In this document: positions 14,736 through 61,549 of the stretch, piece by piece
Position numbering within the stretch: position 1 is the first letter of the stretch
How the letters are laid out: every line of letters starts with the position of its first letter
Sequence record: OR805292.1
Length of the DNA: 64,000 nucleotides
Direction: 5' to 3' (one strand)
Made by a program: the position numbers and the translations under genes
Notes under the pieces: generated by a model
What the model was told of the DNA's origin: nothing
What the model saw: only the letters and a program-made list of their open reading frames with translations
Database searches by the model: none

Positions 14736-14812
14736 CCCTCGGTAGCTCAGTTGGTTAGAGCGCGCGACTCATAATCGCTAGGTCACTGGTTCGAATCCAG
14801 TTCGAGGGACCA
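14736..14812 (+). tRNA. tRNA-CAT, Ile2 (lysidine) type, copy 1
   Basis: Full cloverleaf, GCGA-CTCATAA-TCGC arm typical of Ile2, acceptor CCCTCGG/TCGAGGG, encoded CCA. Confidence 0.88.
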
Positions 14813-14834
14813 ATTTTAAGATGTTGTGCTTTTA

Positions 14835-14919
14835 GCCCGAGTGGTGAAATTGGTAGACACAGGAGACTTAAAATCTCCCGCTTCGCAGCGTACCGGTTCG
14901 AGTCCGGTCTCGGGTACCA
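14835..14919 (+). tRNA. tRNA-Leu(TAA), copy 1
   Basis: GGAGA-CTTAAAA-TCTCC arm, long variable arm, CCA. Confidence 0.96.
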
Positions 14920-14969
14920 AACAAAAGATATAAATACTTAACAAGATAGGAAACTATTCTAAAATTAAA

Positions 14970-15045
14970 TGGCTAGTAGCTCAGTTGGTAGAGCAAATGA
15001 CTGTTAATCATTGGGTCGTAGGTTCGAGTCCTACCTAGCCAGCCA
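14970..15045 (+). tRNA. tRNA-Asn(GTT)
   Basis: AATGA-CTGTTAA-TCATT arm, CCA. Confidence 0.96.
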
Positions 15046-15071
15046 ATTACACTTTGTTGTATATTCAATAT

Positions 15072-15147
<76 letters not shown>

Positions 15148-15216
15148 ATTTTAAATAACAGTTGTATCTAAAGAGATACAATAGTCTAAATAAAATATTC
15201 ATATAATGTTTCAAAC

Positions 15217-15293
15217 GGGACTTTAGCTCAGTTGGTTAGAGCGCGCGACTCATAATCGCTAGGTCACTGGTTCGAATCCAGTAAGTCCCACCA
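15217..15293 (+). tRNA. tRNA-CAT, Ile2 (lysidine) type, copy 2
   Basis: 59-nt core identical to copy 1; acceptor GGGACTT/AAGTCCC, CCA. Confidence 0.88.
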
Positions 15294-15343
15294 ATTTTTA
15301 TATACAAATCAAACTATACTTAAACTATATAATGAATGAATAT

Positions 15344-15428
15344 GCCCGGTTGGTGAAATCGGTAGACACAGGAGACTTAAAATCTCCCGACGAAAGTCGT
15401 GCCAGTTCGAGTCTGGCACCGGGCACCA
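15344..15428 (+). tRNA. tRNA-Leu(TAA), copy 2
   Basis: Same anticodon arm as copy 1; acceptor, variable and T arms diverged with pairing retained; CCA. Confidence 0.96.
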
Positions 15429-16307
15429 AACTCCTACAAAAGGAACATATTATAGTATGTTCCTTTTTTATTATGATATTTTTATTATGAATGAAATAAT
15501 GCATATATCTGCCAACACATACGTAATAGAATATCGCGTATTAAACAAGTTAGTAGTCACTATAAAAAATAATAGATCTTTTACATTATGGGTACATTTT
15601 GATATCGGTACATTTTCTATGGCATGGAAATACAATGCAATATAGAATTAAAAAATGAAATACATTATTAATTTACAATACTCAACAGAAGTAATATATA
15701 TGCCGTGTTTCAACATAATATCGTTATGCGATAATAGATCTGTTACTATCCTTTCTATTACTATGATATTTAAGATAAGATACTATTTGCATCCGATGTT
15801 CCGTTATATTCTATAATACATAATATTTTTATTGTAACAAATACCAGAAGTGCTTAGATAATATATAGCAATTCTGTTTATTATCGATATTGCGGTATAC
15901 TTAGTATTTCTTATTAACCGTATTACATAGAATAAAGAATGGAAAAAATTTTAACTATTTCACATAAAACATTAATATGTGAATTGTCGTTATTAAAATT
16001 GTCGAAATCCATAGTTTGTGTTTATTCTGGCGAAATAGTATGGTATGCTCGGCTAGATAAGAATTGTTATGTTGTACGGATAAGATGATGATAATAATGA
16101 ACTGTATTTTTTCCTATTCGTACTATTTAGAACGCATCGTATGTCATGCAAAAATCTACAAAGGGTTTGTAGTCAGTAAAAATACTTTTTGTGAGAAATC
16201 CGTAATAGCTTTATACTTAATAAATAGTGGTAGTTATTTTCATAAATGTTATGTCGATCATTACTTAATTGTATAGATATATATATATATATATTTTAAT
16301 AAAATAG

Positions 16308-16336
16308 TTGACCGAACAAACAAAACAGTATATAAT
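16308..16336 (+). promoter_or_regulatory. sigma70-type promoter for tRNA-Arg
   Basis: TTGACC-17-TATAAT. Confidence 0.8.
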
Positions 16337-16387
16337 GTTACGCATATAAAGCATTATTACAAAGCTATTATTAGTTGTACAAGATAT

Positions 16388-16464
16388 GCGCTCGTAGCTC
16401 AGCTGGATAGAGCATCCGCCTTCTAAGCGGATGGTCGGGGGTTCGAATCCCTCCGGGCGCGCCA
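16388..16464 (+). tRNA. tRNA-Arg(TCT)
   Basis: TCCGC-CTTCTAA-GCGGA arm, CCA. Confidence 0.96.
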
Positions 16465-17003
16465 ATTTTAAAGAGTGTTGTGTTATGCAAACAATAAGAT
16501 TTGACATAAGACTTCTTCGTTATAGTATGAAACAAGGTTTCTGTTGTATAGGTAAAGATATATTTGAAGTGTGCAGAAAAACTCGGATCAGTCCAGGTCA
16601 GCTAAACTTACGAAAAAATTATATAGGACGAGTATTAATCGGAATTGATTCGAACTATAATCTGCACAATACCTGTTTAGTAGGCTGGACTCGGTATAAA
16701 AATATTATAGTATAAAAATTTATATTAATAATATGAATAGATGCAAAGAACATCTACAATACAGAACAATCAAAAAGCATACATCGACTTGTAGGAAATG
16801 CAAAGAGTTATCGTTACAAATAAAATTATTTTGGCTTCAACAACAAGCATTCAGTATTAGAACTGATACTAGCGGAATATACATATTCGATATTAAATAT
16901 AATTCTATTTACTTATACTCTGTAGCTTGGTATAATACAGAATTATACGGTAAAGGGAAAATAATTTTAGAATAAACATGTATATATAAGAGTACCTCAA
17001 ATA

Positions 17004-17336
17004 ATGAATAATTATTCTAATGATACAGATGTTCTAAAATGGATAAAGCGTAACAATAGAAAAAATGCACGTCTAATTTCATATATAGACGGAATATATA
17101 ATATTGTTTATTTCGATGCCGGAAAAGCAAGAGTTGGCATAGTAAAAGACAATATGCACTGTAGATACGGAATACATAGTCGTGGATCTATGTATTCGAA
17201 AGATATAATGAGCCTGTGGCAATCTAGTACAGGTTCGTGTTCGCCTGATGATGTAAAGATTATGCAAGATTATCTAGACGATAAATGCATACTTCCGGAA
17301 TTTGATTTTTCTCAGATTAAAAATTTAAAATGGTAA
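17004..17336 (+). CDS. Hypothetical protein within the tRNA cluster
   Basis: 110-aa ORF with protein-like composition directly upstream of a tRNA trio. Confidence 0.7.
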   Translation: MNNYSNDTDVLKWIKRNNRKNARLISYIDGIYNIVYFDAGKARVGIVKDNMHCRYGIHSRGSMYSKDIMSLWQSSTGSCSPDDVKIMQDYLDDKCILPEFDFSQIKNLKW

Positions 17337-17359
17337 ATAATATAACAATATAGTTTTAT

Positions 17360-17436
17360 CGCAGGGTATGCAAGAGGTCTAAGCAGAAAGGCTCATAACC
17401 TTTTTATCGTGGGTTCGAATCCCACCCCTGCAACCA
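17360..17436 (+). tRNA. tRNA-Met(CAT), initiator-like
   Basis: C1:A72 mismatch, CGCAGGG/CCCTGCA acceptor, AAAGG-CTCATAA-CCTTT arm, CCA. Confidence 0.82.
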
Positions 17437-17445
17437 GTTTTATAT

Positions 17446-17522
17446 CTAGGCATAGCTCAAGTAGGTAGAGCACTTGCTTTGGGAGCAAGAGGTTGGGGAT
17501 TCGAGGTCTCCTGCCTAGACCA
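17446..17522 (+). tRNA. tRNA-Pro(TGG)
   Basis: CTTGC-TTTGGGA-GCAAG arm, CCA. Confidence 0.93.
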
Positions 17523-17531
17523 ATTTACTAT

Positions 17532-17604
17532 GCAGTCCTAGCTCAATTGGTAGAGCACTGTCCTTCCAAGTCAGATGTTACGGGTTCGAGTCCCGTGGGC
17601 TGCT
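17532..17604 (+). tRNA. tRNA-Gly(TCC), no encoded CCA
   Basis: CTTCCAA loop, T:T mismatch in anticodon stem, ends T-CAA rather than T-CCA. Confidence 0.85.
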
Positions 17605-18349
17605 CAATATTCTAATATAATTGATTGGTATATCTAATCGATGATTCATGTAGTGGATAAATATGGAAGTATAGTTATACCATCTAATATAACGGTGCTG
17701 GAAATACAGGCATACACAACAGAGTTATTGTATGTAAGAAAATCTCATTGTTTATGTTTATACATTCCTAATATAGGAAATTATGCTTTATGGTTTTTAG
17801 ACAGATAGGATAAAAATATAAATTGTTCTGTTTAAGGAACCAACATTAAATGGCAGGTTGCATATTTAGGCTCGATTTGTCTATTTTTCGTGAAAATGTA
17901 TATAGTATTTCTAGGTTGTCTTATACAAAATCTATATGTGTTTCAATAAAAACTAAACCGACAAGCAATAGAAGACAATTAGAAATATATGTTGTAGATA
18001 AAACAACTGATTTTTTAATTGCATGCAAATATTTTTAGCTTATCTATTATTTTATAAATTGACTTACCTTTAAATAACCATTATATATCTGTTATAATAA
18101 CTATTCTAAATAGAAATAAAACCATAAATACACATAATAACGGTGTGGATTTATGGAAAACATATTTAGGATATCTATTAATGCTAACGAAGGTATTATA
18201 CGAATATCCCCTACTTACTTTTTTAATGGTGTTTTTTATTCAAAGCATTTGAATATTTTTATAATAGATCCCGACGGATATTTAATAAGAAAAATATATA
18301 CTTGTAGTACATTCTTATGATGATTTCTTTTAAATATACAAAATAGCAT

Positions 18350-18378
18350 TTGACACAAGTATAATTATTTCGTATAAT
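18350..18378 (+). promoter_or_regulatory. Consensus sigma70 promoter
   Basis: TTGACA-17-TATAAT upstream of ORF 18410-18769 and two tRNA-Ser genes. Confidence 0.9.
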
Positions 18379-18409
18379 AAGTGTATAAAATAACAAAAGA
18401 GAATTTTAA

Positions 18410-18769
18410 ATGATTTCCAAAATTCAAATTGTATACGGAATATATCTTCCTACTGCCGATGCAAAAATTATATACGAAGACTTGGAATACGAATCTAATA
18501 AAATAAATAAAAATATTAGATTATTTGCAAATGATGCATATTTAGAAGATAAGATTTTAGAAAATAAGGAATTCGAAGATAATCCCTATGTTCCGCACTT
18601 TTATGGTATCTTTTGTAAAGAATTCGATAATGACCAAAGTGCATACTTATATAATGTTCCTAAATCTTTTATAGATGAATATAATAATGTAGCTCCAGCT
18701 ATTTTAGCTAGACTTGGTTATTTAGATAGAGTTGCAGGAAAACAACATTGTAGAATAATTTACGAATAG
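18410..18769 (+). CDS. Hypothetical protein
   Basis: ORF directly behind the consensus promoter. Confidence 0.75.
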   Translation: MISKIQIVYGIYLPTADAKIIYEDLEYESNKINKNIRLFANDAYLEDKILENKEFEDNPYVPHFYGIFCKEFDNDQSAYLYNVPKSFIDEYNNVAPAILARLGYLDRVAGKQHCRIIYE

Positions 18770-18783
18770 AATTAACTAGTTTT

Positions 18784-18873
18784 GGAGAGGTGATAGAGTC
18801 TGGTTTATTATACTAGTCTTGAAAACTAGCGGATCGAAAGGTCCCGTGGGTTCGAATCCCACCCTCTCCGCCA
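18784..18873 (+). tRNA. tRNA-Ser(TGA)
   Basis: CTAGT-CTTGAAA-ACTAG arm, long variable arm, CCA. Confidence 0.96.
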
Positions 18874-18878
18874 AATAT

Positions 18879-18968
18879 AGATACTTGACCGAGTGGCTTA
18901 AGGTGCTTCCCTGCTAAGGAAGTGAGTTTGAAAAAGCTCCGTAGGTTCGAATCCTACAGTATCTGCCA
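18879..18968 (+). tRNA. tRNA-Ser(GCT)
   Basis: CTTCC-CTGCTAA-GGAAG arm, long variable arm, CCA. Confidence 0.96.
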
Positions 18969-37231: not shown

Positions 37232-40200
37232 TACGACTACAATCAAATCTACACATTATCTGTTTTGATTCTATTTATAATAGTATAGTGTTTTGTGATA
37301 AAGACGGCGACGAAATACATTGCTGCTTATGGTAGCGTGTTTGCATTTAACGCAAAAACATGTTATACAGTATTGTTTGTTGAGTATTTTGACATTGTTG
37401 TTTCTAAAAATCTTTTATATAAAGGATTAATATGCATAATATATTTAAATTATCATATTGTACAAATATGTTTAAATTTAAAATATTATGGGATCAAAAA
37501 GTATACCTATGCTCGTTTATGTCATTGCGGTATACTACCCTATATATTTCTGCAGGTCGTATCAGATAAATGGTAACAAATATATTAGAATTAATGTATG
37601 TATGTCACCATACATATAATATAACAACTAACGGCTACTATAACATTATCTTCTTAAACAAAGATAATAATATTATATTTGTTTTGTATTAAAACAAATG
37701 GGAATATTTCTCTTATCACGCAATACTTGCTACATTTGTGTTATACATGTCAGACGTATTGTATACAAGATTAAAATGTATGACAGACATGGCAATTATG
37801 TGCTTACAATTAATGTTATCTAAGAACATATCAAATTATATAGAATTTTGTTGTATGTAATACTGTTTAATAATGGCATTAGATATTGATAAAATAACAT
37901 ACATTTCATTTAACTCATGCTATATATCAGTTAATTGTTTTAGTGTTATTATATATTATGAGTACGGTAGATTAATTTTATATGATGATACCCCCGGGCT
38001 TATATAAGAACGTATTCTACATACAGTATAATGTGCGTCATATCAGCATATATTATTTTGATGCATGCGAATGTAATATATTACAGGTAGAATGCAATAA
38101 TTTTCTTACTCTAACATATAAATTAAATGAAAAAACCAATAAGTAATATAGTTGAATTATCACTTAATACGCACCGGTTTAATACCAATTATGTAACTAG
38201 TGCTCATTGTTTAGTATTTTATAATGCGTCGTCATATCCTATACATTATGTTCGTTTACACACAAACAAGCGTTAACACTTATGTCGCCGGTATCAATTC
38301 ATAATATAGTTTGTATTCAACACTATCTTAATAGATGGTATACTAGAATATCCCCAACAGGTATTAATGTGTATTCAGATTCATATGTTAGAATTAGAAT
38401 AAATGTTCATAAATAAAAATATTATAAATCACGATATACATTATGATATGTTGCAGGTATCCTCATGCGCACATAGAATAGATTCATCGCTATGTAGCAC
38501 GTATCTATTAGCATGCATTTATAATAGTAATGAAAAAATTATTATAATTAGTGTTGCATATCTAAGATGAATGGTATAAAAGATATAATAGAATTTTCAT
38601 CGAATACATACGAAATATGTGCCAATACAGCAAGACTTAGAGATATAGTATACTACTCGATACTCATGAAGACAAAAGACGGTCTTGCATTTTATATGGT
38701 AGACTCATTTGCATATATAACATGACCAGTATCATTGAATGTTCTTACAATACTTCTAATATTGTGTTTCGTTTTTGTAAAAACAGTGACATTTTAGTTG
38801 TGAACTTTCTAAACAAAAATGATGACATACATTTCATTGTAATAATTAGATACAAATATACATATCGTTAATTACTAATACATAGGAGAGTAATAAATGA
38901 ATAGAGCAGCAAAGAAAAATGTTTCTATATTTGTTATTCAGAATCATACTTTTAGAGTTCATGTTGTACGATATGATCCTGCGAGAATTTCAATATATCT
39001 CTCACTTGTACATAATTGTGTTGCATCTTAAGAACTATATCTGTATAATGCAGGTTACATTTGCATGTATAGGGTTATCTTTCATATAATACATGCTTAT
39101 TAACTATACGACATGTATTGAATTACTTTATAGTATTGTATGATTCGTAAAAATATAGTTCTAATATCACATAACACGTCAAAAATAATATTAGAAAGAA
39201 GAACAAGTAAAGTATTACGTGTTTCTATGTTTAAATCAATTGGAAAATACTACTACCATTATTATACGGCGTGTGGAAATATATAATGCAAGATCATCAT
39301 TTCACTACACTGTTGTATATGTCTAATCGTGCAGATAGAATAAAGATTTTTCGACAGCCTTCCTGTCTTATTGTATATATTAAGTCAGGTATGTTATATA
39401 TTAATAAACAATTCTTAAAATGTTAGAATATATAGATACTCTCAAATATAATTACATTTTAACTGTATGCAGCGGTGTAGAGTCCATATCATTTGAATCA
39501 TTTACTAGATCAGTGATATCAGTTTCCATAATATATAATAATATTACTATCTTTCCGTGTCAAACTACACGAACTATACTGTATGGTGTATGATCTTATT
39601 TTTATTTCTTGTAATGCTTCTTTAATTAGTTTTTCTATTTTTAATAAAACATTTGAAGTTTATATTTATGGAAAAATGTTAGTGGTAATTTATTGTACAG
39701 GACTACATATATGTTAGATATATTGTTACGGTTCCAACGCAGAGTGGATACAATTAAGGTGGAGTTAATATGGCGTCACTTGCATTTTTATGAAAAAGCC
39801 GGCGAGGAGTTAGAGTTATTTCATATTATATTTCTGCCGCCCGATCACCGAAGTATTAATTAATAAAATTCTATAACAAAAACAAGTTGTATTTTTCGGC
39901 ATAAAAATTTATGAATAAAGATACAAACAAAGAATCACCTATTATTAAAGAATTATATTTTGTAAAATAAAATACTTTTAGAATCTAAAACTAAAATGAT
40001 CGATTGGGTATTTAAATTGTCTGCTAGTTGCTACAAAATAGACAGACAACATAGTGATTCAATAGAAATATATAATTCATATTGTCTTTTAGGAACTATA
40101 CAATATTATTGTGCTCAGTTGAAAATAAATTTATATAAATTTTAATAGTGTGGGAAGAATTCTTTTGAATAGGAATACTATATGAATGATCTATTACAAT

Positions 40201-41189
40201 ACCAACTCACACTATGTTCCATATCTTTACAGAAAGCTCGTTTTAAGTCAGGCAATGTGTATTACATTCTAATTGAACGTAACGACAGCGGTAGGTATTC
40301 CCGAGATATAAAAATACTTAAATGATATGCGTATATTTGTAATATCACAAAATTGTATGACTATTAGACTTTTTTATCATACATATTTCATTAAAGATGT
40401 AAATTATGATTCAATTTGTATATTATATAAAACGAATAGCAGAATTGTAATACATCCGAGTTTTACAGTAGATGAATATATTCGATCTGTCTTATAATTC
40501 TTCATTTATTTTGATGAAATCGAATAGATTATACATTAGTAATTATAATTATTCTGTAGGGGCTACATATGTATTACCTGCAATAACAAAATATATACAT
40601 CAAACATTCTATGTAAAAGCTGCAATATATAGATTTTTAGATACAGGCATACTAGTATGAAATTCAATATATTTAAATTGCAAAGAGGATGTCATATTAT
40701 AGATTGTTATTTTTATGATATTCTTAGATTTTCAAAACCTACATATTTTCGAGATGCTGATAGAATAACTATATTTTCATTAATAGGTACTAATAGTATC
40801 AGAATTTATGAGGATATGTATAAAGGATATGCACAAACCATATGATTGAAATATTAATATTTTCGAGTGCCAGTGATTATATTAGTATAAGACATGATAT
40901 GGCACGGCTATATAATCTTAATGGTATTAGTGAATTAATATTTGTATCAAAACCATACAAATATATTATATTAACTAATTTAAAAAATCATATAGGTATA
41001 TTCTGTATTTCAAATATAATAAGTGAAAGGGTGATGGGAGATATTACTAGTAATGAATGTTGGGCTTATCCTTGGCCTCCAGAGACTGGCATAGATGTAT
41101 ATATTGATTTCCTGTATAAAAATGATGAGCTTTCTACTAAACACACAATATAACCATAGACAAATAAGTGCATTATGCTAATATATACA

Positions 41190-42097: not shown

Positions 42098-42282
42098 GTT
42101 TCCAAATTCAATTTTAGGCACAAACTCGGATCCGCATTTGCATTTTGCATTTACATTTTGTGTTCTGAGTGTATATGCAAAATGCAATCGCGCATGTTGT
42201 CGATGCATTGGCTAATCTTTTATTTTTGATAGTTTAGAAAAGATTAAGAACAGAAACTATCTGTAAATTAATAAAAATAACA

Positions 42283-42596
42283 TTTACATTACATACACAT
42301 ATGCATATACTATATACAAGTTATGCGCTGTTGCATACGTAAATACCTCCTATGTTGTTTAGATATGTCGATTCTGGTATAACCAGATAGACCTAAGGAT
42401 GATGCTAGTGATTCCTTAGTATTGTATATTCTAGCTGAGTATAAAGAGTAAGGGGCTTTATACAAATAACAATTCCTTAGGCAAGATATACCGCTCCGTT
42501 GTGCTGACGAGCATAATTTGCCCAGATACAGAGCACGTGACTGGTCTGAGGAGCATTTATATCAGAAAGGCAGACTTATGTTTGCCTTTCTTTTTG
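42283..42596 (+). ncRNA. Candidate ~280-nt sRNA including its promoter and terminator
   Basis: TTTACA-17-TATACT (42283-42311), internal hairpins, AGAAAGGCAGAC-ttat-GTTTGCCTTTCT plus T-run; no ORF inside. Confidence 0.55.
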
Positions 42597-43952: not shown

Positions 43953-46869
43953 TTCATGACCATATAATCTATATACTACTGTGTCTTTAACTATATTTTC
44001 TATATCAGCTAGTTTGTATTCAATAACTTGGTATTCTATGCCAGCGACACAATGCTGTTATATAGACATAATAACACGCGACGCTGATATTTTTATAACC
44101 TATCCATTTTATAATAACATACTTGTATCTAAAATTATTTCTAATACAATACCTGTAGGAAGTTATGAACACTATATTAGAGATATGTCGTGGAATAAGA
44201 AATGATTATATAACAGTCAATAATTTTACATATGACTACTATCTAGAGGTAAACACACCTGCGTTTTCTTTAATGATAATTATTCCGACAGTTCCTATAT
44301 TAGACAATACTTGCATTACTTTTATAAAAAAGTATTAATATGAATATATTCTTTATATCAAACGGTCTATCTAATATAATATATCACAAAGATAATTTGA
44401 TACAACATAATATACATATGATAGATATTGAGATTAATAATTCTACTGTTATTTGGCTTACATATTCTTTCAATATTACTAAAGTATCATTTAAATATAT
44501 TATCTAATTCATTTTCTTATTGTACGAATTGCAATTGCAAATTACTCTTATTTGTAATTGCATATAAACAATCAGTTGCTATTAAAAGTATTTGCTGTTA
44601 ATATATTATATAACAGTGCAATTGATATTTTAAAATACAGTGTGCAATGCATCTTACATGTATTAAAATTTGTGTGTTACTTGGTTTGCATTAATGATTA
44701 ATATACCTCTCTTACAGTACAAAACTAATACTATAGACAATTTGTTCGGGGGATCGTTCTCGAAAAGTATACAAGTGAGAGATAACAGTCTAATTATACT
44801 TGTTAGTTTTTATATAGAAGGTTCTAAATATAGAAAATTTGTATACAACAAAGAATACCTCGAAGGGATTTCAGCATATGCAAACAACAATCGTTAATGC
44901 CCTAAAATCTATTAATGTAAAGTATTCGGATATATTTTACACAAATGGTAATTTGTGTAATACTGTTACAATACGAAATATTCGCAAAAACGGTAAATTA
45001 GATTCGGCAGAACAAATTAATGTTGAATCAGTTGTGAGCAATTATTTGATTCAAAAAGATTTAAATTTGCCCTTTTCTATTCAATGGGCAAATAATGCTT
45101 GCTGTGAAGAGTATACTACACTTATTCTCTTCTTCAGAAAATAGTGTATGATTAGATTAAAAAGATATGTTCAATTGCATAGCATATACAGATTGTCTTA
45201 CTATGCGCACGGCATACATTTTAGCAAAACAAAGAAGATAATGCTTTACGTAGGAAACGCAGGTCCCGTACCCGTAACATGACAGTATATAGCGTTAAAA
45301 TGTGCATTTTTTGCACGATTTTGCGGGGTATGCGTTACAAGCAATACACACATACTGCTTTTAAAATGCATGCTTACATGCGCTTTGTAGGGGGTTTAAA
45401 ACATGCTTAAATTAGTTACCACTGTGCTATACAACGTCTGTGTAGCTTCGTTGATAATGATTGTGTTTGTATGTGGTATAAATTTAGTAATGTATATAGA
45501 TAACAATACTGACAATAATCCAGTTGTTATCTTTATTTCCCTTCTATCGGTTATTTGGGGCGTTGCGCGGATAAGCTATATGTTTGTTACTATCCAATTT
45601 CAGTCCAAGAAATAAAAGTATTGGTAACATATGATAGATAAAAACGGAAATACAGAAGACTTTGATTTTGATAAGGCATGCACTATAACTGATCTGTCTG
45701 TTCCTCTTCAGCAAAAAATACAATCATATAAATTAAATAAAATATTGGTTATGGTTGCAATCCTTAAATATTCGAATATAAAACAAGAAATTGGATGTTT
45801 CGCTATCATATGGGATCATATAATAAAAATAACAGTTGAAGTAAAATGCAATCCGTATGCAGAAACACACATACTCATGCATGCGCATGTATTTTCTAAT
45901 TCCGATTCATGTACTCATAGTGTATTGCTGAATTACAGAAACAAATATTTACCCACTAATTATTATAATTAATATGGAAGATATTCTTAAAATTGCTAAA
46001 CTAATCGGGTACGTAAACATACATGCAAATAAACATTTTCAGTATGTTTTTAACAAAGATATGGAACATGTATGTGTTAGTGCCAAGACTAGGACAAGTA
46101 TGAACGGAATAAAATACCTTTATGTAGTAATGAATATATATTATATATATTGCCATCAAGAAAGTGTTGCCGTTATATTAAACGAAGTAAACACTGATGA
46201 AATGCCTGTATTAGATAATCTTTATGCTAAACTTAATGATTTAGTTACACATAAATCTGTTATAAAATTTAAATATACAGAAATAACACAAGAACAAATA
46301 GATTTGTTGAATAATAGTGAAAGATATATAGTATATTTTGACTCTAATTTAGAATACGGAATAGCTTCGTTTTATTAATTTTGAGGAATATATGAAAAAA
46401 CAAACAGGTTTTACAGATTGGCCATTGATTAGTTTAGGTACAATTATTATCTTGTGTGTATGGGTATTAATTCTACAATATACAGAAATAAATGTACTAG
46501 AAGAAAAATGTAACAAAGTAGGTGGTATTTTTAATAACACCGTTTGCATACGGTCAGATGCAGTTATTAATTTAGATAAGGTAAAATAAAATGCCAAAAC
46601 TTTACGTTAACAAAAAACATGATACCATTTATCTTCAGTTAGATCATTTCTCATCTAATACTGTATCTCCAATTAATTACAACGAAGATGTAGAATATGT
46701 AATTGATAGGATCCGTAGTCTGCACAAATCCGGCTTCGGATTTAGTCATATGAATACTCTACAAGAATATCTTACGGCAAGAACAGAACAGGATAAGAAG
46801 TTTAAGCTTAAAGTAGAAGACTTCGAAGTAGTATCATTTAAGATTTAAAATTATACATAATCAAAGTAT

Positions 46870-46898
46870 TTGACATTTGATGTGTATACTAGTATAAT
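46870..46898 (+). promoter_or_regulatory. Perfect sigma70 promoter with no downstream ORF
   Basis: TTGACA-17-TATAAT. Confidence 0.92.
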
Positions 46899-46904
46899 TT
46901 GCTC

Positions 46905-47520
46905 ATGCTGTCGTAACAGCTACTTTGTTCCATTCACAAGCAGCTCTGTTCCATTATTGGATATTGGTAGTAGAAACTATCCCCATCGTGCCCACAGTAT
47001 TGTTCTGTTAGAGACAGGTTAAAGCATACAAAAGTGGGTTATTTAAATTATGATTTTGGGTGCTGAAGTATAGTCGTTAGACAAGGATATGTCTAATGTT
47101 GCAAAGGACTATGCGAAACGTATTATATATCTTATCCGATATTAGATATGTAATAAAAGGATGAAGCTCTGGTAGAAACAGAGTGTAATTCTTGCTTGTA
47201 TTTCACACGGATATACAAAAGAATATACACACCAACTTCAGCATTGATGTGAATTTTCTAGCATAGGTATATAACATCGATGTTCCGGGATTCATTGGAA
47301 ACAATGAGAGAATGATGTAATCTGAGGAAAAAGGTCCCCGCCTCGTCCATATTACGAAATGGTTTTGAGTACTTATGCCCTCGTCCTATATTGGCATATG
47401 GGTTTTATATTCTCCCGTAATTACGGGAGAATATAATTTCCTGAACCTACTTGGAAATGGACGCTTCTGCTGTGCTTCGCACAGCATCTAAGGGCCTTCA
47501 CCCTTACCGCTAAGAGCAAG
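46905..47520 (+). ncRNA. Candidate ~620-nt structured RNA
   Basis: Nested long-range helices (TGCTGAAGT/ACTTCAGCA, ATAGTC/GACTAT, GTCCAT/ATGGAC) and many hairpins; no ORF of 60 aa or more. Confidence 0.65.
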
Positions 47521-47763
47521 AGCAAAAGCAATATAATTACAAATAAGAATTAATTATTGTTTAGTTTTATCGTAATGAATATGAAGATAAAAACTAAACA
47601 ATAATTCACATGTAGCGTTAGCTACTGTGAATATCTACTATAGTATTAACCATATATGTATACAAGGGCATAATATGACTGTTACTTGTTGACAATTTGA
47701 TATATGTGTTACACTTCGTATATTAAATATACATTACAATGTTTTGATTATTAGGAACATACT

Positions 47764-48900
47764 ATGTCATTATCTCTGACTGCTGCTATTAATCGATATA
47801 CTAGTCTAATAGAAGAAAATTTCAAAATAAATTATCTGAAGAATTTTGAGTCAGGATATATCTCATATAAATTACTAAGAAATAAAACATTCCTACATAC
47901 TGAAATATCACATAGTCTTGATTATATAAAGGTAATTATTTCTTATACATATGTAGAAAATGATGTCAAACTAGATGAAAAAACACCTGTTGTACATTCG
48001 TATATTTCTATTACTGATTGCTCTAAATTTAGAGTAGGAGATATAAGAATGTTTTACGATTCAGTTCCTCGTGGAAATGTTTTTAATATTAAAGAGAATA
48101 CTCAAGTTAGTTGGGCAACAGCTAATATTGGAATTCACGAGAATCCGTTTAATCTTAATTATATTTCGAACAATAAGTATATTCGATTAGAAACAGGAGA
48201 TATATTTGTCTGTATTAATGATAGTATGGTAAATGAACTACAAGAACATATGCATGTTCATTCTATATGTACTGACAAAACAAAGAAGTTTTATGTAAGA
48301 GAAATTGATTTGAATATGCTACATTACAAAAAACACATTATGGAATAAAGAATGAACTACAAAGCATTAGAAGTATTTTATTTCTTTCTAGAACATTACA
48401 AGGTAAATCCAGTTGCCGACTTGGAATTTAAATTCGAACCCTCAGGTAGTGATGATCAATCTAAGCGCAAGTCATCACTGTCGTTTGTTAAACGTATTGG
48501 TGTTCTTACCCTTCCATTCAACGAATTATACGAAGTTCAGAATCGATTCATGTCAGATCTTCGAGAAATGAATGTAGTATATAAGATAGGATTTAATTAT
48601 AATGCATTCAACGTATTAGCACCTTTGTATGCAAGATATGAAAAGAATGTAAAAGAATTTCGTCGACTTTTAAAGAAATACTCAAGTTTCAACGAAGTAA
48701 CAGAATATTACAAAAAAGCTAACAACATGTTACCGGACAATGTATACGAAACAATGAAGGAAGATTTTTCATTGTTTAACGACGTTACTACAAAGAGGTT
48801 ATCTGAAATAAAACTTTGTTATCCTAATTGGCAAGTATGGGATTCTGAACATCCCAACTGGGAAACAATAAATCAACGTTATAAGAATGCAAAGAAATAA
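47764..48900 (+). other. Two hypothetical ORFs (47764-48348, 48352-48900)
   Basis: AGGA SD, chained ORFs, terminator at 48911. Confidence 0.75.
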
Positions 48901-48910
48901 TGCATATTTA

Positions 48911-48976
48911 GAAAGGGAATTATAATTCCCTTTCTTTTTGGATCTATATTAGCAAATGCTAATTAATCTTATTTGC
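48911..48976 (+). promoter_or_regulatory. Terminator plus 25-bp palindrome junction
   Basis: GAAAGGGAATT-ata-ATTCCCTTTC then GCAAATGCTAATTAATCTTATTTGC (48952-48976). Confidence 0.8.
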
Positions 48977-49612
48977 ACAAATTTAATCCTATTGTGTTTT
49001 CTATTTTGAAGTGCTACATTACATGTAGTTGCATAAAACTATACACAGGAGAAATGATATGTGGGATATCAAAGACGGGGATGATATCGAAGTCGAAGCA
49101 GTTATGGATGAACGAAGCTATGAGTGGACCGGCAAGTTACGTATCATCCAATATCGGACCCTTCAATCAGCTCAGTGGCGTGTTATTATCAATATAGTAG
49201 AATTTTGGAGTCATTCTACTGAAAGTATACTGAACGAACTTGGTATAGAAGCTAAACACATCACTAAAGGATATGCCACACTTAGCATGGTTCGTTTCCC
49301 GGAGGTTGATTACCTATTTAGTGTAACACCCGATAATGCAGATTATGTAACTGTTAACCACAGTGCAGTAGACATTACTGACAGTTGGTTTGTTGCAAAA
49401 AACATAAAAGCAGTTATGTATCATATGGGATCTGAAATCCAGATCACTCCGTGGTTTGTGCGTAAAGATAGTGGCGAGTCAAATTTCAATTGTATTGATC
49501 GATTAGTAGCTCTAGTGAAAGAGAATACTGATGTCGACACGTATCAGTACATCAAGATAGGTTGTCCTGAGGACAAGTCATTTTACTTTGCGTGGATAGA
49601 CAAATAATTCGT

Positions 49613-49649: not shown

Positions 49650-51734
49650 GCATAGTAGAAGTAACACATAACGTTTTGATTTAATGGAGTTCTAACATGA
49701 AAAAAGAATTTGAATCGTGGATTCGGACTCGTTCTCCGGCGCCGCTTGCATATAATGCAGCCGACGACTTGTACCTCAACCCGCATGTTCAGGCACGCTA
49801 CGAAGCCTGGAAAGCCAGTCGTATGGCACTAAGGGTAGTGTTGCCGAAATCTCACATGGCGTCGGAATACGCGCCCAAAACAAAAGTTTTCAATACAACC
49901 GATATGGAACTGGCCCTCCAAGAAGCCGGCATCGAAGTGTCGCTATGAAGACGTTTTTGAAGATGCTCGCATATTGCGTGCTTGGGACATCAATTGGCAT
50001 TGCCATAAGCCAATGGTTCGTCTTCGTCCTAGAGATGAGGCTTGGCACCGCGCTCTGGTACATCGTTGGCCTTGGTCCTGTGCTGCTTGTGTTTTGCATT
50101 TTGGGCAGCTTCCTTCACTGGCTGATTCATAAGCACTTAGAGAAAAAGTAATGACCGGAATTGAGGTAGTGAAATGAGCAGACTAACAGCCGAGCAAGCC
50201 CGTGACATAGCGCGAGCGAAAGACGATGTCGATGCCATCCTTAACGACATCGCCAAAGCAGCAGCAGAAGGAAAGTACGTGTACACTACCCGCGCCTATG
50301 GGTTCGGCATCGGCACCTCGCGGCGCAGCGAAGCGATCCTCAAAGTGTTGCGTAGCCTCGGCTACGACTGTGCGGTGCATGCTGAGGGACGCCAGTCTGT
50401 TGACCTGTGGCTTGAAGTGAAATGGGGAGACAAGCCATGACTAACAACCCCGGAGATTCAAAAATGATCGTAGAAAACACCAAGCAAGCCGCCGAAGACT
50501 TCAAAACTTCCATGGCTAAGATTTTTCCGAATTACATCGCCGCCGCGTCGGTTTCCGATAACCTTGGTCCGTCGATGACAATTTCGTTTGCGAATGTCGG
50601 TTGCGCTTCCGAAGCCCCGAACAGCATTCTGATGAATGCGAGCGGTTACATGCGCTTTATGATGCATTTGTGTGACAATCGCGGGAATGTATTGCCGGAA
50701 GGTTCGCCGGTCGAAATTGAGCTGCTAACGTGGTCTATCCCCTATCGTTCGGAAGTGATCAAGTTCCGCAAGATCAAGGGCAAGACACCAGCCGAAGCTA
50801 TGCAAAAGCTAGTCAAGTGGTTTGAAAAAAACGCCGAAGCTATCCGGGGTCTGTAATGGTCTCCACGTAGGACACGCAGAATGAACATTGTGTTGGACAA
50901 ATTGCTGTTTGGCGGTTTCATCGACCAGCACCGCAATGAACTTGCCCAGCAACAACTGAATCGGTTGTTTGCCAAGTACGGTGAGCCGAAGATTGGTATC
51001 ACACGGGCATGCTTTCTATCTAAGCATTACGTCCTGAAGTTCCCGATTAATGACAGGGGTGAGCGGTGCAACGATTGGGAAGGTAGCTGTTCTGGCAGCT
51101 ACTTGGCACGCGGACGCTGGCTAGAAATCGGAGGCTTCATTTGCGTCATGCAAGAGCGTTTGGTTGAAGTGGATTGGAAGAACAACACCTGTGCAAACTT
51201 TCCTGATTGGGTAGGCAGCATAGATTGTGGTCAAGTCGGCTACGATAAACATGGCGTTCTGAAAGCGTATGACTTTGGGTGAAGCATGACCATCAATTTG
51301 TTTGTTGTCAACACAAAGAACGAACCTATCCCAACCGACCACAGGTCGATACTCCGCTATCTTGGCCTTAGCCTGCACACGCAAGGCTGTCGCGTATCTG
51401 CCAAATTCAGCAGCGGTAAGTTGAAGCTGAACAACTACAACATCGAATTTTTTCACATGGCGGACGAGAACGATGAACTTCGCCGCCTTTGCTCCTGCGC
51501 TAAGCAATATAACCTCAGCATGACACTGCAAGCGAAGGAGGAGATCACATGATCTGTGTAATCGCTCTAGTCCTTGCCTTCTCTGGTCATCCCGGGCTGG
51601 CCATTTACGCCTGCCTAATCGCTTACATTTTGGGTGACTAACATGCGCATCGTCAGCACTCCACTTCGCAAAAGCGCCCGTAATTGTGAACACGCCCTTG
51701 CAAAGGCTATTACCGAAATGGCGGAGATGATTCC

Positions 51735-52049
51735 ATGACCGACACCAACAAAATAAAAAAGCTAGCAAAACTGGCTACGCCGGGTCCGTGGTATGCGACC
51801 TGGGAGGAAGGCGATGACATTGCATGGTCGAATCTGTTTCCTGTAATCCAAGCGGACAATGGCGAAGTCGTGATCGGTAACGAAGGCTTTTACAGCGATT
51901 TGGAGCAGGACAAGGCTAACGCCACTTTCTGTGCTGCCGCCAACCCCCGAGCCGTCCTCGACTTGCTAGACGAGATCGACAAACTCAAGGCAGAGAACGA
52001 GTCGCTGCGCGAGTCTGTCGATCGACTTGCCGAGATGCTGCGATCTTAA
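51735..52049 (+). CDS. Ead/Ea22-like protein
   Basis: KLAKLATPGPW ... NATFCAAANPRAVLDLLDEI. Confidence 0.75.
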   Translation: MTDTNKIKKLAKLATPGPWYATWEEGDDIAWSNLFPVIQADNGEVVIGNEGFYSDLEQDKANATFCAAANPRAVLDLLDEIDKLKAENESLRESVDRLAEMLRS

Positions 52050-55422: not shown

Positions 55423-55829
55423 AAAAAGCTCTTTCATGTGTAATAGGTATTATTGTTCTGTTACTAGGCGTATTTATGGTAGATAATCCTGCAATAGGAT
55501 TAATGCTAGGAGGGTTAGTAGGCAGTTATATTTTCAGCATAGGCGGAGTAATTCTATGTGTTATATCGTTTATGATATTTGCACTTGCCTTTGTTGAGAT
55601 GAAATGAATGATTTATTTAAGTATTTGGACATTTGTATCTATAATAGTATCGATATATCATAATATTTTAACTATAAAAATGCATAAACAGGTACTGTTG
55701 TATAAAGATTATACTTTTTATAAGGAAAGATTAGATTTTGTCTGTAATAGTTATATATTTTTCAATGTAATATTCTTCATTTTCATTGCATGCGTTACAA
55801 AATAGATCACAAAAAGTTTTAAAATTCAG

Positions 55830-56349
55830 TTTACAGCATGCATAGTTTTACGTATTATAAACACACAAAGCAATACAGCATAACGCATTGTAAGCAACAC
55901 TAAACGGGAGACACCGTCCCGCAAGCAGCCCGCCCGCGATGTTCGCGGGCTGCGGCAAACAGGTGTACAAGGTCTAGTAACGTGGAAGGCGCAGCATACC
56001 TTTCCCTAAATCGGAAATTGGTCAATGACGTACCTGCCCCTGGACACTGCTAGACCTTGCTGCTACAAGCGGGACAGCTACAAAGGTACACTGTATGTAT
56101 CTATGCTTTACCCCGCTTTGTAGCAGGTCTTAAAAACGGTCTACTGGCATATGCTTTAGTGCTAGTAGGAATCATTAACCTACAACTATTATATGCTTCC
56201 TGGAGGTGAAGAGTATGCCGCCGCAGCATTAAATATACATTATGATGATGATAATTATGAATGCCGAAACACCGCTTCGATTCGTTTAAAAGACAGATGT
56301 CTGAATCGAATGTTTTTGGGCAAAAAGGTCCCTTAGATGGGATTTTTTT
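55830..56349 (+). ncRNA. Candidate ~485-nt structured RNA including its promoter and terminator
   Basis: TTTACA-17-TATTAT (55830-55858); helices GTCCCGC/GCGGGAC, GCAGCCCGC/GCGGGCTGC, CAAGGTCTAG/CTAGACCTTG, GCTACAAAG/CTTTGTAGC; hairpin plus T7 at 56328-56349. Confidence 0.65.
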
Positions 56350-56363
56350 GCGGCTGCTAACTA

Positions 56364-56436
56364 GCAAACGCGAATTAATCTTATTTGCAATTTAAGAAAA
56401 ATACCAGTTGACTGTAGCTTGCTAACATAGTACATT
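56364..56436 (+). promoter_or_regulatory. 25-bp palindrome followed by a sigma70 promoter
   Basis: GCAAACGCGAATTAATCTTATTTGC (56364-56388), then TTGACT-17-TACATT (56408-56436). Confidence 0.8.
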
Positions 56437-56465
56437 TAACTCATAAATCCGCAGGAGTAGCAGTT

Positions 56466-61438: not shown

Positions 61439-61549
61439 ACAAATAATAATTATTCTTATTTGCATTTAGTGATGTAAATAATTCTTATTTGTAATTGCGA
61501 TTAATTCTTATTTGCTACAATAGATAGAATAAGAATAATTCACATTTGC
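61439..61549. promoter_or_regulatory. Cluster of three to four Fur-box-like palindromes
   Basis: ACAAATAATAATTATTCTTATTTGC (61439-61463), GTAATTGCGATTAATTCTTATTTGC (61491-61515), TAGAATAAGAATAATTCACATTTGC (61525-61549). Confidence 0.75.

Follow-up and report, generated by a model that had tools for sequence, protein, structure and literature searches.

A family of three structured RNA loci behind host-type promoters in the jumbo phage Cassandra

A stretch of 64,000 nucleotides from record OR805292.1, hereafter called the window, is part of the genome of Pseudomonas phage Cassandra (subtract 124,000 from a record position to obtain the window position). Cassandra is a jumbo phage of 288 kb in the PA5oct group of Wroclawvirus, the sole genus of Arenbergviridae. 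At 46905 to about 47445 the window holds a selected, structured RNA gene which is present in three copies in the genome and lies behind a host-type promoter. The copy in the window is called locus A, the equivalent of ncRNA004 of phage PA5oct is called locus B, and the third copy, not annotated as RNA, is called locus C. Locus A, formerly unannotated as such, is a member of a family whose sole previously noted member is PA5oct ncRNA004, and it is, in our judgement, very probably a functional structured RNA. No paper describing the family or its structure was found in the literature, and neither the family nor its structure or organisation in three copies appears to have been described before. 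An earlier note on this DNA had proposed a large structured phage non-coding RNA (ncRNA) here, and this is borne out by covariation between the paralogues, compensatory changes among strains, purifying selection, promoters on the + strand, coverage by RNA sequencing (RNA-seq) and the lack of a conserved reading frame.

The promoter, which had been described as perfect, matches the sigma70-type consensus throughout, and the transcript is predicted to start near 46905:

46870-46898, + strand: sigma70-type consensus promoter TTGACA-17-TATAAT, 12/12 positions matching
46905-47445, + strand: main structured RNA (best estimate), from the predicted start site to a conserved GC-rich hairpin; it may extend to ~47520-47630

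Perfect TTGACA-17-TATAAT sites occur 11 times in the 288-kb genome, and two of these drive loci A and C. PA5oct is dependent on host RNA polymerase and has promoters of the type TTGAC/TATAATA (PMC7318152). The ORF-free stretch seen earlier behind the promoter is real, since no open reading frame (ORF) of 55 amino acids or more is found from 46849 to 47763 (915 nt), the largest such gap in the window. The gap is flanked by two small + strand ORFs, equivalents of PA5oct gp049 and gp050, and its PA5oct counterpart is found at 12.8-13.7 kb, within the 39-kb terminal repeat. Because locus A lies within this long terminal repeat, each virion DNA probably has two copies of it, and its expression probably begins as soon as the cell is infected.

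A search of the remaining genome identified two further loci which share near-identical blocks with 46939-46992 and 47037-47065:

Record ~117.3 kb (L007 ~17283-18030), + strand: locus B, within L007 17248-18030 (~117.25-118.03 kb)
Record ~235.2 kb (L008 ~48160-49360), + strand: locus C, within L008 48125-49360 (~235.1-236.4 kb)

Blocks of 35 and 26 nt are identical in the three loci (blastn), and a genome search with R1, a covariance model of the shared 5' core, gave exactly three copies (147.5 bits for locus A, 152.9 for B and 154.8 for C), the next best match scoring 18 bits. Loci B and C are each situated at a divergent strand-switch junction outside the window. A sigma70-type promoter on the + strand is present at all three copies, that of B being TTGACA-17-TAAACT and that of C a perfect TTGACA-17-TATAAT with an extended -10 TG; sequence homology among the loci does not extend back to the promoters but sets in some 35-155 nt into the predicted transcripts. 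Locus B corresponds to the PA5oct feature 'ncRNA004, putative lncRNA; annotation based on RNA-Seq data' (619 nt, + strand, MK797984.1 246116-246734), the 5' end of which lies 12 nt downstream of the predicted start site. Locus C is ~1 kb long owing to large insertions and is annotated with tiny hypothetical ORFs in PA5oct, and with tiny ORFs or nothing in all records. Downstream of locus B (L007 18040-18290) the DNA is AT-rich and holds a direct repeat of 23 nt, the two copies of which begin at 18125 and 18189; after these comes a strong bidirectional intrinsic terminator (L007 18262-18289).

Locus A and ncRNA004 agree in helix topology, are of similar length, and both have the core blocks of 35 and 26 nt and a sigma70-type promoter on the + strand. 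They differ in that ncRNA004 is at a strand-switch junction outside the terminal repeat, has diverged peripheral hairpins and is reported to be weakly expressed, whereas the coverage of locus A is deep. The paper on ncRNA004 (PMC7318152) reports no structure, family relationship or promoter for it.

The structural map of locus A comprises the following elements:

46940-47066, + strand: 5' core domain (RNAalifold), closed by P1 (46940-44/47062-66), with hairpins P2, P3 and V1 and helix P4 inside
46957-46991, + strand: invariant block 1, 35 nt, the same in loci A, B and C
46991-47038, + strand: V1, a three-tier hairpin (outer, middle and inner stems), 7/15 pairs covarying between paralogues
47038-47063, + strand: invariant block 2, 26 nt, containing a palindrome of 8 nt, AUUUAAAU (47041-47048), for which no pairing is predicted
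47069-47113, + strand: hairpin IIa, outer stem 47069-75/47107-13 and inner stem 47077-83/47090-96, 13/14 pairs covarying
47121-47155, + strand: hairpin IIb, 6/7 basal pairs covarying
47156-47184, + strand: conserved block 3, AAAGGAUG followed by a short hairpin whose loop is of the GGUAGAAA type
47183-47230, + strand: hairpin IV, with equivalent hairpins from independent folds of A, B and C
47230-47236, + strand: conserved block 4, CACCAAC
47242-47282, + strand: hairpin V, 6/6 pairs of its base covarying, with equivalents in A, B and C by independent folds
47287-90/47335-38, + strand: helix P(b5/b6), GGGA/UCCC in A and C, GGCA/UGCC in B
47405-47436, + strand: GC-cored hairpin, a 32-nt perfect palindrome in Cassandra, with equivalents in B and C and 4 covarying pairs
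47468-47486, + strand: A-specific hairpin UGCUGUGC-uuc-GCACAGCA, with a compensatory double change in strain Deifobo
47552-47631, + strand: 3' module, made up of an AT-rich hairpin (47552-47606; 17 bp, 21-nt loop) and, after it, a short hairpin (47609-47631)

The helices quoted in the earlier note are all present in the sequence. Those of ATAGTC/GACTAT and TTAGACA-aggata-TGTCTAA covary in two paralogues, the TGCTGTGC-ttc-GCACAGCA hairpin carries the compensatory double change in Deifobo together with a freely varying triloop, and the GTCCAT/ATGGAC helix was seen in locus A only. The proposed enclosing helix of TGCTGAAGT(47061) and ACTTCAGCA(47235) likewise exists in A, but no equivalent is seen in B. 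P1 covaries instead (46941-44/47062-65 is CAGC/GCUG in A and C, UGGC/GCCA in B) and, because both helices use 47062-47065 and the TGCTGAAGT/ACTTCAGCA helix is absent in B, the comparative evidence favours P1.

The segment enclosed by P(b5/b6) is variable in length (47 nt in A, 99 in B and 197 in C), and the single-nucleotide polymorphisms (SNPs) found among strains in the region of hairpins IV and V (47202, 47205 and 47251) are all in a bulge or in loops. The GC-cored hairpin, which in 8/10 strains has a bulge owing to a 1-nt T indel, is possibly a leaky terminator or 3'-end element. Equivalents of the 3' module in B and C have 8/12 and 3/5 covarying pairs in its two hairpins, the loop being common to B and C. 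Between the RNA body and the 3' hairpins an AT-rich motif (47531-47555) was observed, with 15-21-nt reverse-complement copies elsewhere (window 61479-61514; L008 1755-1773 and 3573-3593); it could be a repeated regulatory site, or chance in AT-rich DNA.

For the comparison of the folds, loci A, B and C were cut at six common sequence anchors and the segments between these were folded independently, which gave the same topology from differing sequences in all three. A curated set of 12 hand-aligned helices (P1, V1 with its three tiers, outer and inner IIa, IIb, V, P(b5/b6), GC, AT and short hairpins) was used for the counting of pairs. The counts were taken from a scripted helix table; the covariance-model alignment puts the 3' half of V1 out of register between the paralogues. 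Canonical pairing in A, B and C was found for 72 of the 76 curated pairs, with both sides changed in 50, one side in 2 and neither in 20. An unsupervised pipeline, in which segments were folded, aligned by structure and sequence and scored for pairs of A canonical in B and C, kept 56 pairs out of 123, 36 of them compensatory. When B and C were dinucleotide-shuffled (200 trials), 19.3 ± 5.8 pairs were kept and 13.8 ± 4.8 were compensatory (maxima 36 and 29), and when they were replaced by random real genome segments (240 trials) the values were 17.8 ± 5.1 and 12.4 ± 4.2 (maxima 33 and 24). The observed values were reached in neither case. Covariation with homologues, named earlier as a way of checking the RNA, is evident both in the curated pairs and against the nulls, and the order and topology of the peripheral helices are shared with the ncRNA004 family and preserved by compensatory change.

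Folding energy was less informative. The z-score of a 616-nt stretch was -5.1 on the + strand and -4.7 on the - strand, and in 400-nt windows locus A had z = -3.0 and -4.5, compared with a background of -1.34 ± 1.85 (minimum -6.9) across the whole 64 kb. Thermodynamics alone are only suggestive for locus A, because background windows in this AT-rich genome average z -1.34, with outliers down to -6.9.

Ten sequenced strains were used for an alignment of locus A and its 3-kb flanks. Over the 737 nt of the RNA (46905-47640), 17 columns vary (2.3 %), the nucleotide diversity (pi) being 0.0097 in the core, and 47521-47640 has no variable sites (pi 0). The flanking ORFs have 4.5-16 % variable columns and pi values of 0.0125-0.054, so that the RNA is the most conserved segment within its 6-kb neighbourhood, and purifying selection acts on it more strongly than on the protein genes nearby. 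The adjoining gp050-like gene (47764-48348; 194 amino acids, no Pfam match) is the most variable conserved-position neighbour (pi = 0.054), its protein identity of 79-92 % within the clade being in sharp contrast to the RNA.

Compensatory changes were also seen within the strain collection. In strain 30-3 the changes 46993 C>U and 47036 G>A keep a pair in the outer stem of V1, and in Deifobo the changes 47470 C>A and 47484 G>U compensate each other in the A-specific hairpin, all three loop bases of which vary among strains. Over A, B and C, 56 substitution events were counted, of which 32 were unpaired, 18 pair-keeping and 6 pair-breaking, compared with 20.7, 12.3 and 22.9 expected from random placement (p < 0.0002 for the deficit of broken pairs). 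Pair-preserving changes, mostly via G.U, were enriched for the fold of the + strand (p = 0.026), not for that of the - strand (p = 0.71). These strand-specific changes, the promoters and the stranded annotation of B together suggest an RNA read from the + strand.

The strand dependence bears on whether the element acts as DNA, for instance as a replication origin or a recombination or packaging site which is incidentally transcribed and whose hairpins would form in DNA, as cruciforms or in single strands. Such an element would be in keeping with three copies scattered over the genome, two at divergent junctions, and with the AT-rich tracts and direct repeats downstream of B; both strands fold well, and the helix-sparing distribution of SNPs reaches significance for the - strand fold too. 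The enrichment of G.U-mediated, pair-preserving substitutions is nevertheless confined to the + strand, homology begins inside the transcript rather than at the promoter, every copy has a promoter of matching orientation, and GC skew has no origin signature, although GC skew is uninformative as an origin test. We consider a DNA element very improbable.

It was also considered whether the loci are a non-functional or selfish repeat, decayed genes, or small protein genes as in the Cassandra record. In the gap, 3-4 ORFs of 30-55 amino acids are annotated in the records of Cassandra, Paride, Ettore and PAC2, and the family was not found outside one genus. Five other records of the ten call no ORF in the gap, and no reading frame common to A, B and C was found, the ORF boundaries being unrelated between paralogues. 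The 50-amino-acid ORF of Cassandra begins inside the -35 hexamer, its conserved peptide is translated block 1, and in locus C there is a stop codon beside block 1. A translated ORF across the region had been named in the earlier note as one observation that would speak against an RNA; no frame is conserved among the paralogues. The four mini-ORFs of 30-50 amino acids which the Cassandra record places inside the RNA as hypothetical proteins (46870-47022, 47132-47230, 47258-47350 and 47421-47531) are almost certainly spurious. Neutral decay would not produce a segment that has changed less than the genes beside it and whose substitutions are in accord with its helices. A repeat or a set of small genes is in our view the least probable of the explanations considered, and the strand-specific wobble pattern and the conservation together make both a DNA-level role and neutral decay unlikely.

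Transcription was assessed from RNA-seq contigs of four runs from a 2020 study of a PA5oct-like strain (unstranded assemblies), which cover the entire locus A. Contig depth in A-specific sequence reached 2928 (46964-47268, run X1) and 7783 (47105-47164, run X2), compared with ~1000-1700 upstream, and was 2-8 fold above that of the flanking genes, with its peak over 46957-47300, depth within the shared blocks being inflated by B and C. It dropped 6-10 fold by ~47360-47440 and was 240-590 over 47300/47360-47750 in all runs. RNA is abundant at locus A, mostly as the 5' 400-450 nt.

In RNA-seq, ncRNA004 ends 22 nt beyond the GC-cored hairpin of B and, by homology, A probably has its main 3' end shortly after 47436. 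The end near 47520 proposed in the earlier note is also possible, because A carries ~75 extra nt before a motif shared with the end of B; the length of ~620 nt suggested there agrees with the 619 nt of the RNA-seq-defined paralogue. Contigs from six independent RNA-seq or DNA data sets break at 46962/3 (Logan contigs, region 46962-46991). These breaks were rejected as a molecular end, since they are an assembly artefact caused by 31-mer repeats that A has in common with B and C. One contig carried foreign sequence before 46936, and in a chimeric RNA-seq contig the flank upstream of B is fused to the body of A.

Several observations weigh against the interpretation of locus A as a functional structured RNA acting in trans. 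Folding energy by itself is unexceptional for the Cassandra genome, the invariant core, being without variation, gives no covariation signal, and all sequences are from one genus with at least 98 % identity, so that the covariation is drawn from three paralogues only. The RNA-seq contigs are unstranded and assembled, contig depth is a poor measure of expression, and the contigs run on into gp050 without mapped 5' or 3' ends for A, which is compatible with a role in cis. Locus A is also not among the four ncRNAs of the published PA5oct study (PMC7318152), in which ncRNA004 is weakly expressed, at 0.02-0.08 % of phage reads (Lood et al. 2020). The 2018 preprint on PA5oct had five ncRNAs, compared with four in the final paper.

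Two of the other PA5oct ncRNAs, ncRNA001 and ncRNA002, have equivalents by coordinate offset at window ~42300-42540 and ~55990-56440, and ORF-free gaps at 42209-42500 and 55806-56100 fit these. Each accounts for 1-5 % of phage reads (PMC7318152). The core covariance model gave no match to the two equivalents, which are therefore unrelated to the three-copy family.

The main rival explanation, which we hold to be unlikely, is a leader RNA acting in cis, which would modify the host polymerase (processive antitermination) or work by regulated termination or attenuation, as the put RNAs of phage HK022 do, and so control the long + strand gene arrays behind each copy. All copies are directly behind strong promoters and before long co-directional gene arrays, B and C at divergent strand-switch junctions. 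The intrinsic terminator at L007 18262-18289 stands between B and the next genes, every copy ends with the GC-cored hairpin followed by a U-containing tail, and RNA-seq contigs continue from A into the downstream gene. As in the family described here, the HK022 put RNAs are paralogous structured RNAs just past strong early promoters, with unmodified host polymerase and with terminators downstream, and the promoter-proximal placement upstream of terminators was found both for B and for A, where a terminator follows the second downstream gene (48910-48935). The put RNAs are, however, compact, with ~70 nt and two stem-loops, and known antitermination RNAs are of ~70-120 nt, far below the 0.55-1.0 kb and at least 12 helices of the locus A family, which has no evident sequence or structural similarity to put. 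In addition, ncRNA004 was seen as a discrete transcribed region, and the 5' part of the RNA accumulates well above the downstream sequence, as for a stable stand-alone RNA. The gene downstream of A also has a promoter-like site of its own:

47690-47724, + strand: promoter-like site before the downstream gene, TTGATA-16-TATATT (10/12); also TTGACA at 47690

The gene at 47764-48348 need not for this reason rely on read-through from the RNA; the stretch with the site varies among strains (pi = 0.052).

No relative outside the 11 Wroclawvirus genomes was found in GenBank phages, IMG/VR, JGI metagenomes or GTDB genomes. A blastn search in 'distant' mode of 50,697 phage records returned just these 11 genomes (at least 98.8 % identity), some of the extra places per record in megablast being palindromes that match the minus strand. 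Scans for exact copies of the blocks in viral, metagenome and genome collections found none; ten metagenome matches to a 19-mer were judged by the covariance model to be chance. The flanking proteins had no relatives in IMG/VR, homologues of gp050 among 5.8 billion proteins were from the same clade only, and Pfam gave nothing useful for nine neighbour proteins of the three loci.

The earlier note had placed the RNA in the size class of ROOL and GOLLD. These RNAs are ~0.5-1 kb long and associated with phages or prophages, have many conserved helices around conserved junctions, and have no known biochemical function. The size class is shared, as are the phage association and the conserved helices around conserved junction sequences, but membership is not: even at E <= 10 no Rfam model matched A, B or C, those of ROOL, GOLLD, OLE, HEARO and raiA included, and cmscan of the whole window at the gathering threshold gave only tRNAs and chance-level matches. 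The host clade also differs, there are three paralogues per genome here, and the tRNA cluster is 28 kb away, not adjacent. Locus A is not ROOL or GOLLD.

A protein sponge had been the other suggestion, based on many GGA triplets, one of them in a hairpin loop (AGGATA). In this reading GGAs in loops or single strands would titrate the host translational regulators RsmA/RsmN (CsrA family), as RsmY and RsmZ do. The loop GGA is real, since AGGAUA (47084-47089) is the loop of hairpin IIa and its GGA is kept in all three paralogues; block 3 has a conserved AAGGAUG, which we take to resemble the RsmA/CsrA consensus, and B holds three GGAUG motifs compared with 0.53 expected (p = 0.016). RsmY, RsmZ and CsrB likewise have multiple paralogues, GGA in hairpin loops and an AAGGAUG motif. 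The abundance of GGA was, on the other hand, not above chance, with 11 in A compared with 8.2 ± 2.1 in dinucleotide shuffles (p = 0.14), 10 in B compared with 7.7 expected and 14 in C compared with 11.4, and neither GGA nor A-N-GGA was enriched in any of the three (p = 0.10-0.26). Only 3 GGA sites keep their position, one of these within a hairpin loop, and GGA is not at the centre of the largest invariant blocks. GGA density is ~1 per 55 nt, compared with ~1 per 15-18 nt in RsmY/RsmZ, and the RNA is 5-8 times longer. Sponges of the RsmY/RsmZ/CsrB type are GacA-dependent, whereas locus A is behind a phage early promoter. A sponge is a minor and quite improbable possibility.

Elsewhere in the window, a cluster of 12 tRNA genes on the + strand was observed at 14736-18965, the same number as reported for PA5oct. 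The 2-kb bin 50001-52000 has a GC content of ~0.51, compared with 0.33 genome-wide, and the strain alignment collapses over 49650-52000 (pi ~0.45); this strain-variable GC-rich island just past the gp052-like ORF is possibly acquired DNA. Several ORF-poor, highly AT-rich gaps (826, 348, 330 and 463 nt; GC 0.25-0.28) were found within 37577-40326.

As to how the structured RNA works, we lean, with somewhat less than even confidence, to an action in trans as a scaffold or decoy. Long invariant blocks at junctions and loops amid freely covarying helices suggest that the core contacts a partner and that the helices give shape, and several paralogues with a common core are typical of scaffold or decoy RNAs. 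In such a mechanism host sigma70 RNA polymerase would read the + strand from the consensus promoter, the invariant junction and loop nucleotides would bind a host or phage partner, protein or RNA, and the peripheral hairpins, diverged but compensating, would supply the architecture of a stable scaffold or decoy. The 3' end would probably be set at the GC-cored hairpin by leaky termination, by processing at the downstream long AT-rich hairpin, or by both.

A bolder version, which seems to us rather doubtful, is that the family is a new 'ornate' RNA class with a 125-nt invariant core and the exposed palindrome AUUUAAAU, in which the paralogues would co-assemble into an RNA-only or RNA-protein particle, or the core would dock onto host RNA polymerase or the ribosome. 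Cassandra also encodes a homologue of ribosomal protein S21. If this version were true, a jumbo phage without an RNA polymerase of its own would be using RNA for the takeover of the cell from the first minutes.

Apart from rRNA, RNase P and introns, large structured ncRNAs are uncommon, and ROOL and GOLLD of phages are still without a function. The new family has unusually clean internal evidence, in the form of three covarying paralogues and compensatory changes at the population level. Its recognition corrects the annotation of four GenBank records with spurious mini-ORFs in the RNA, and of PA5oct, in which one of three copies is marked as RNA; the family relationship of the three had previously gone unnoticed. 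PA5oct-like phages can be cultivated and manipulated genetically, matter for phage therapy and infect the well-studied strain PAO1, so that the function of the RNA is directly testable.

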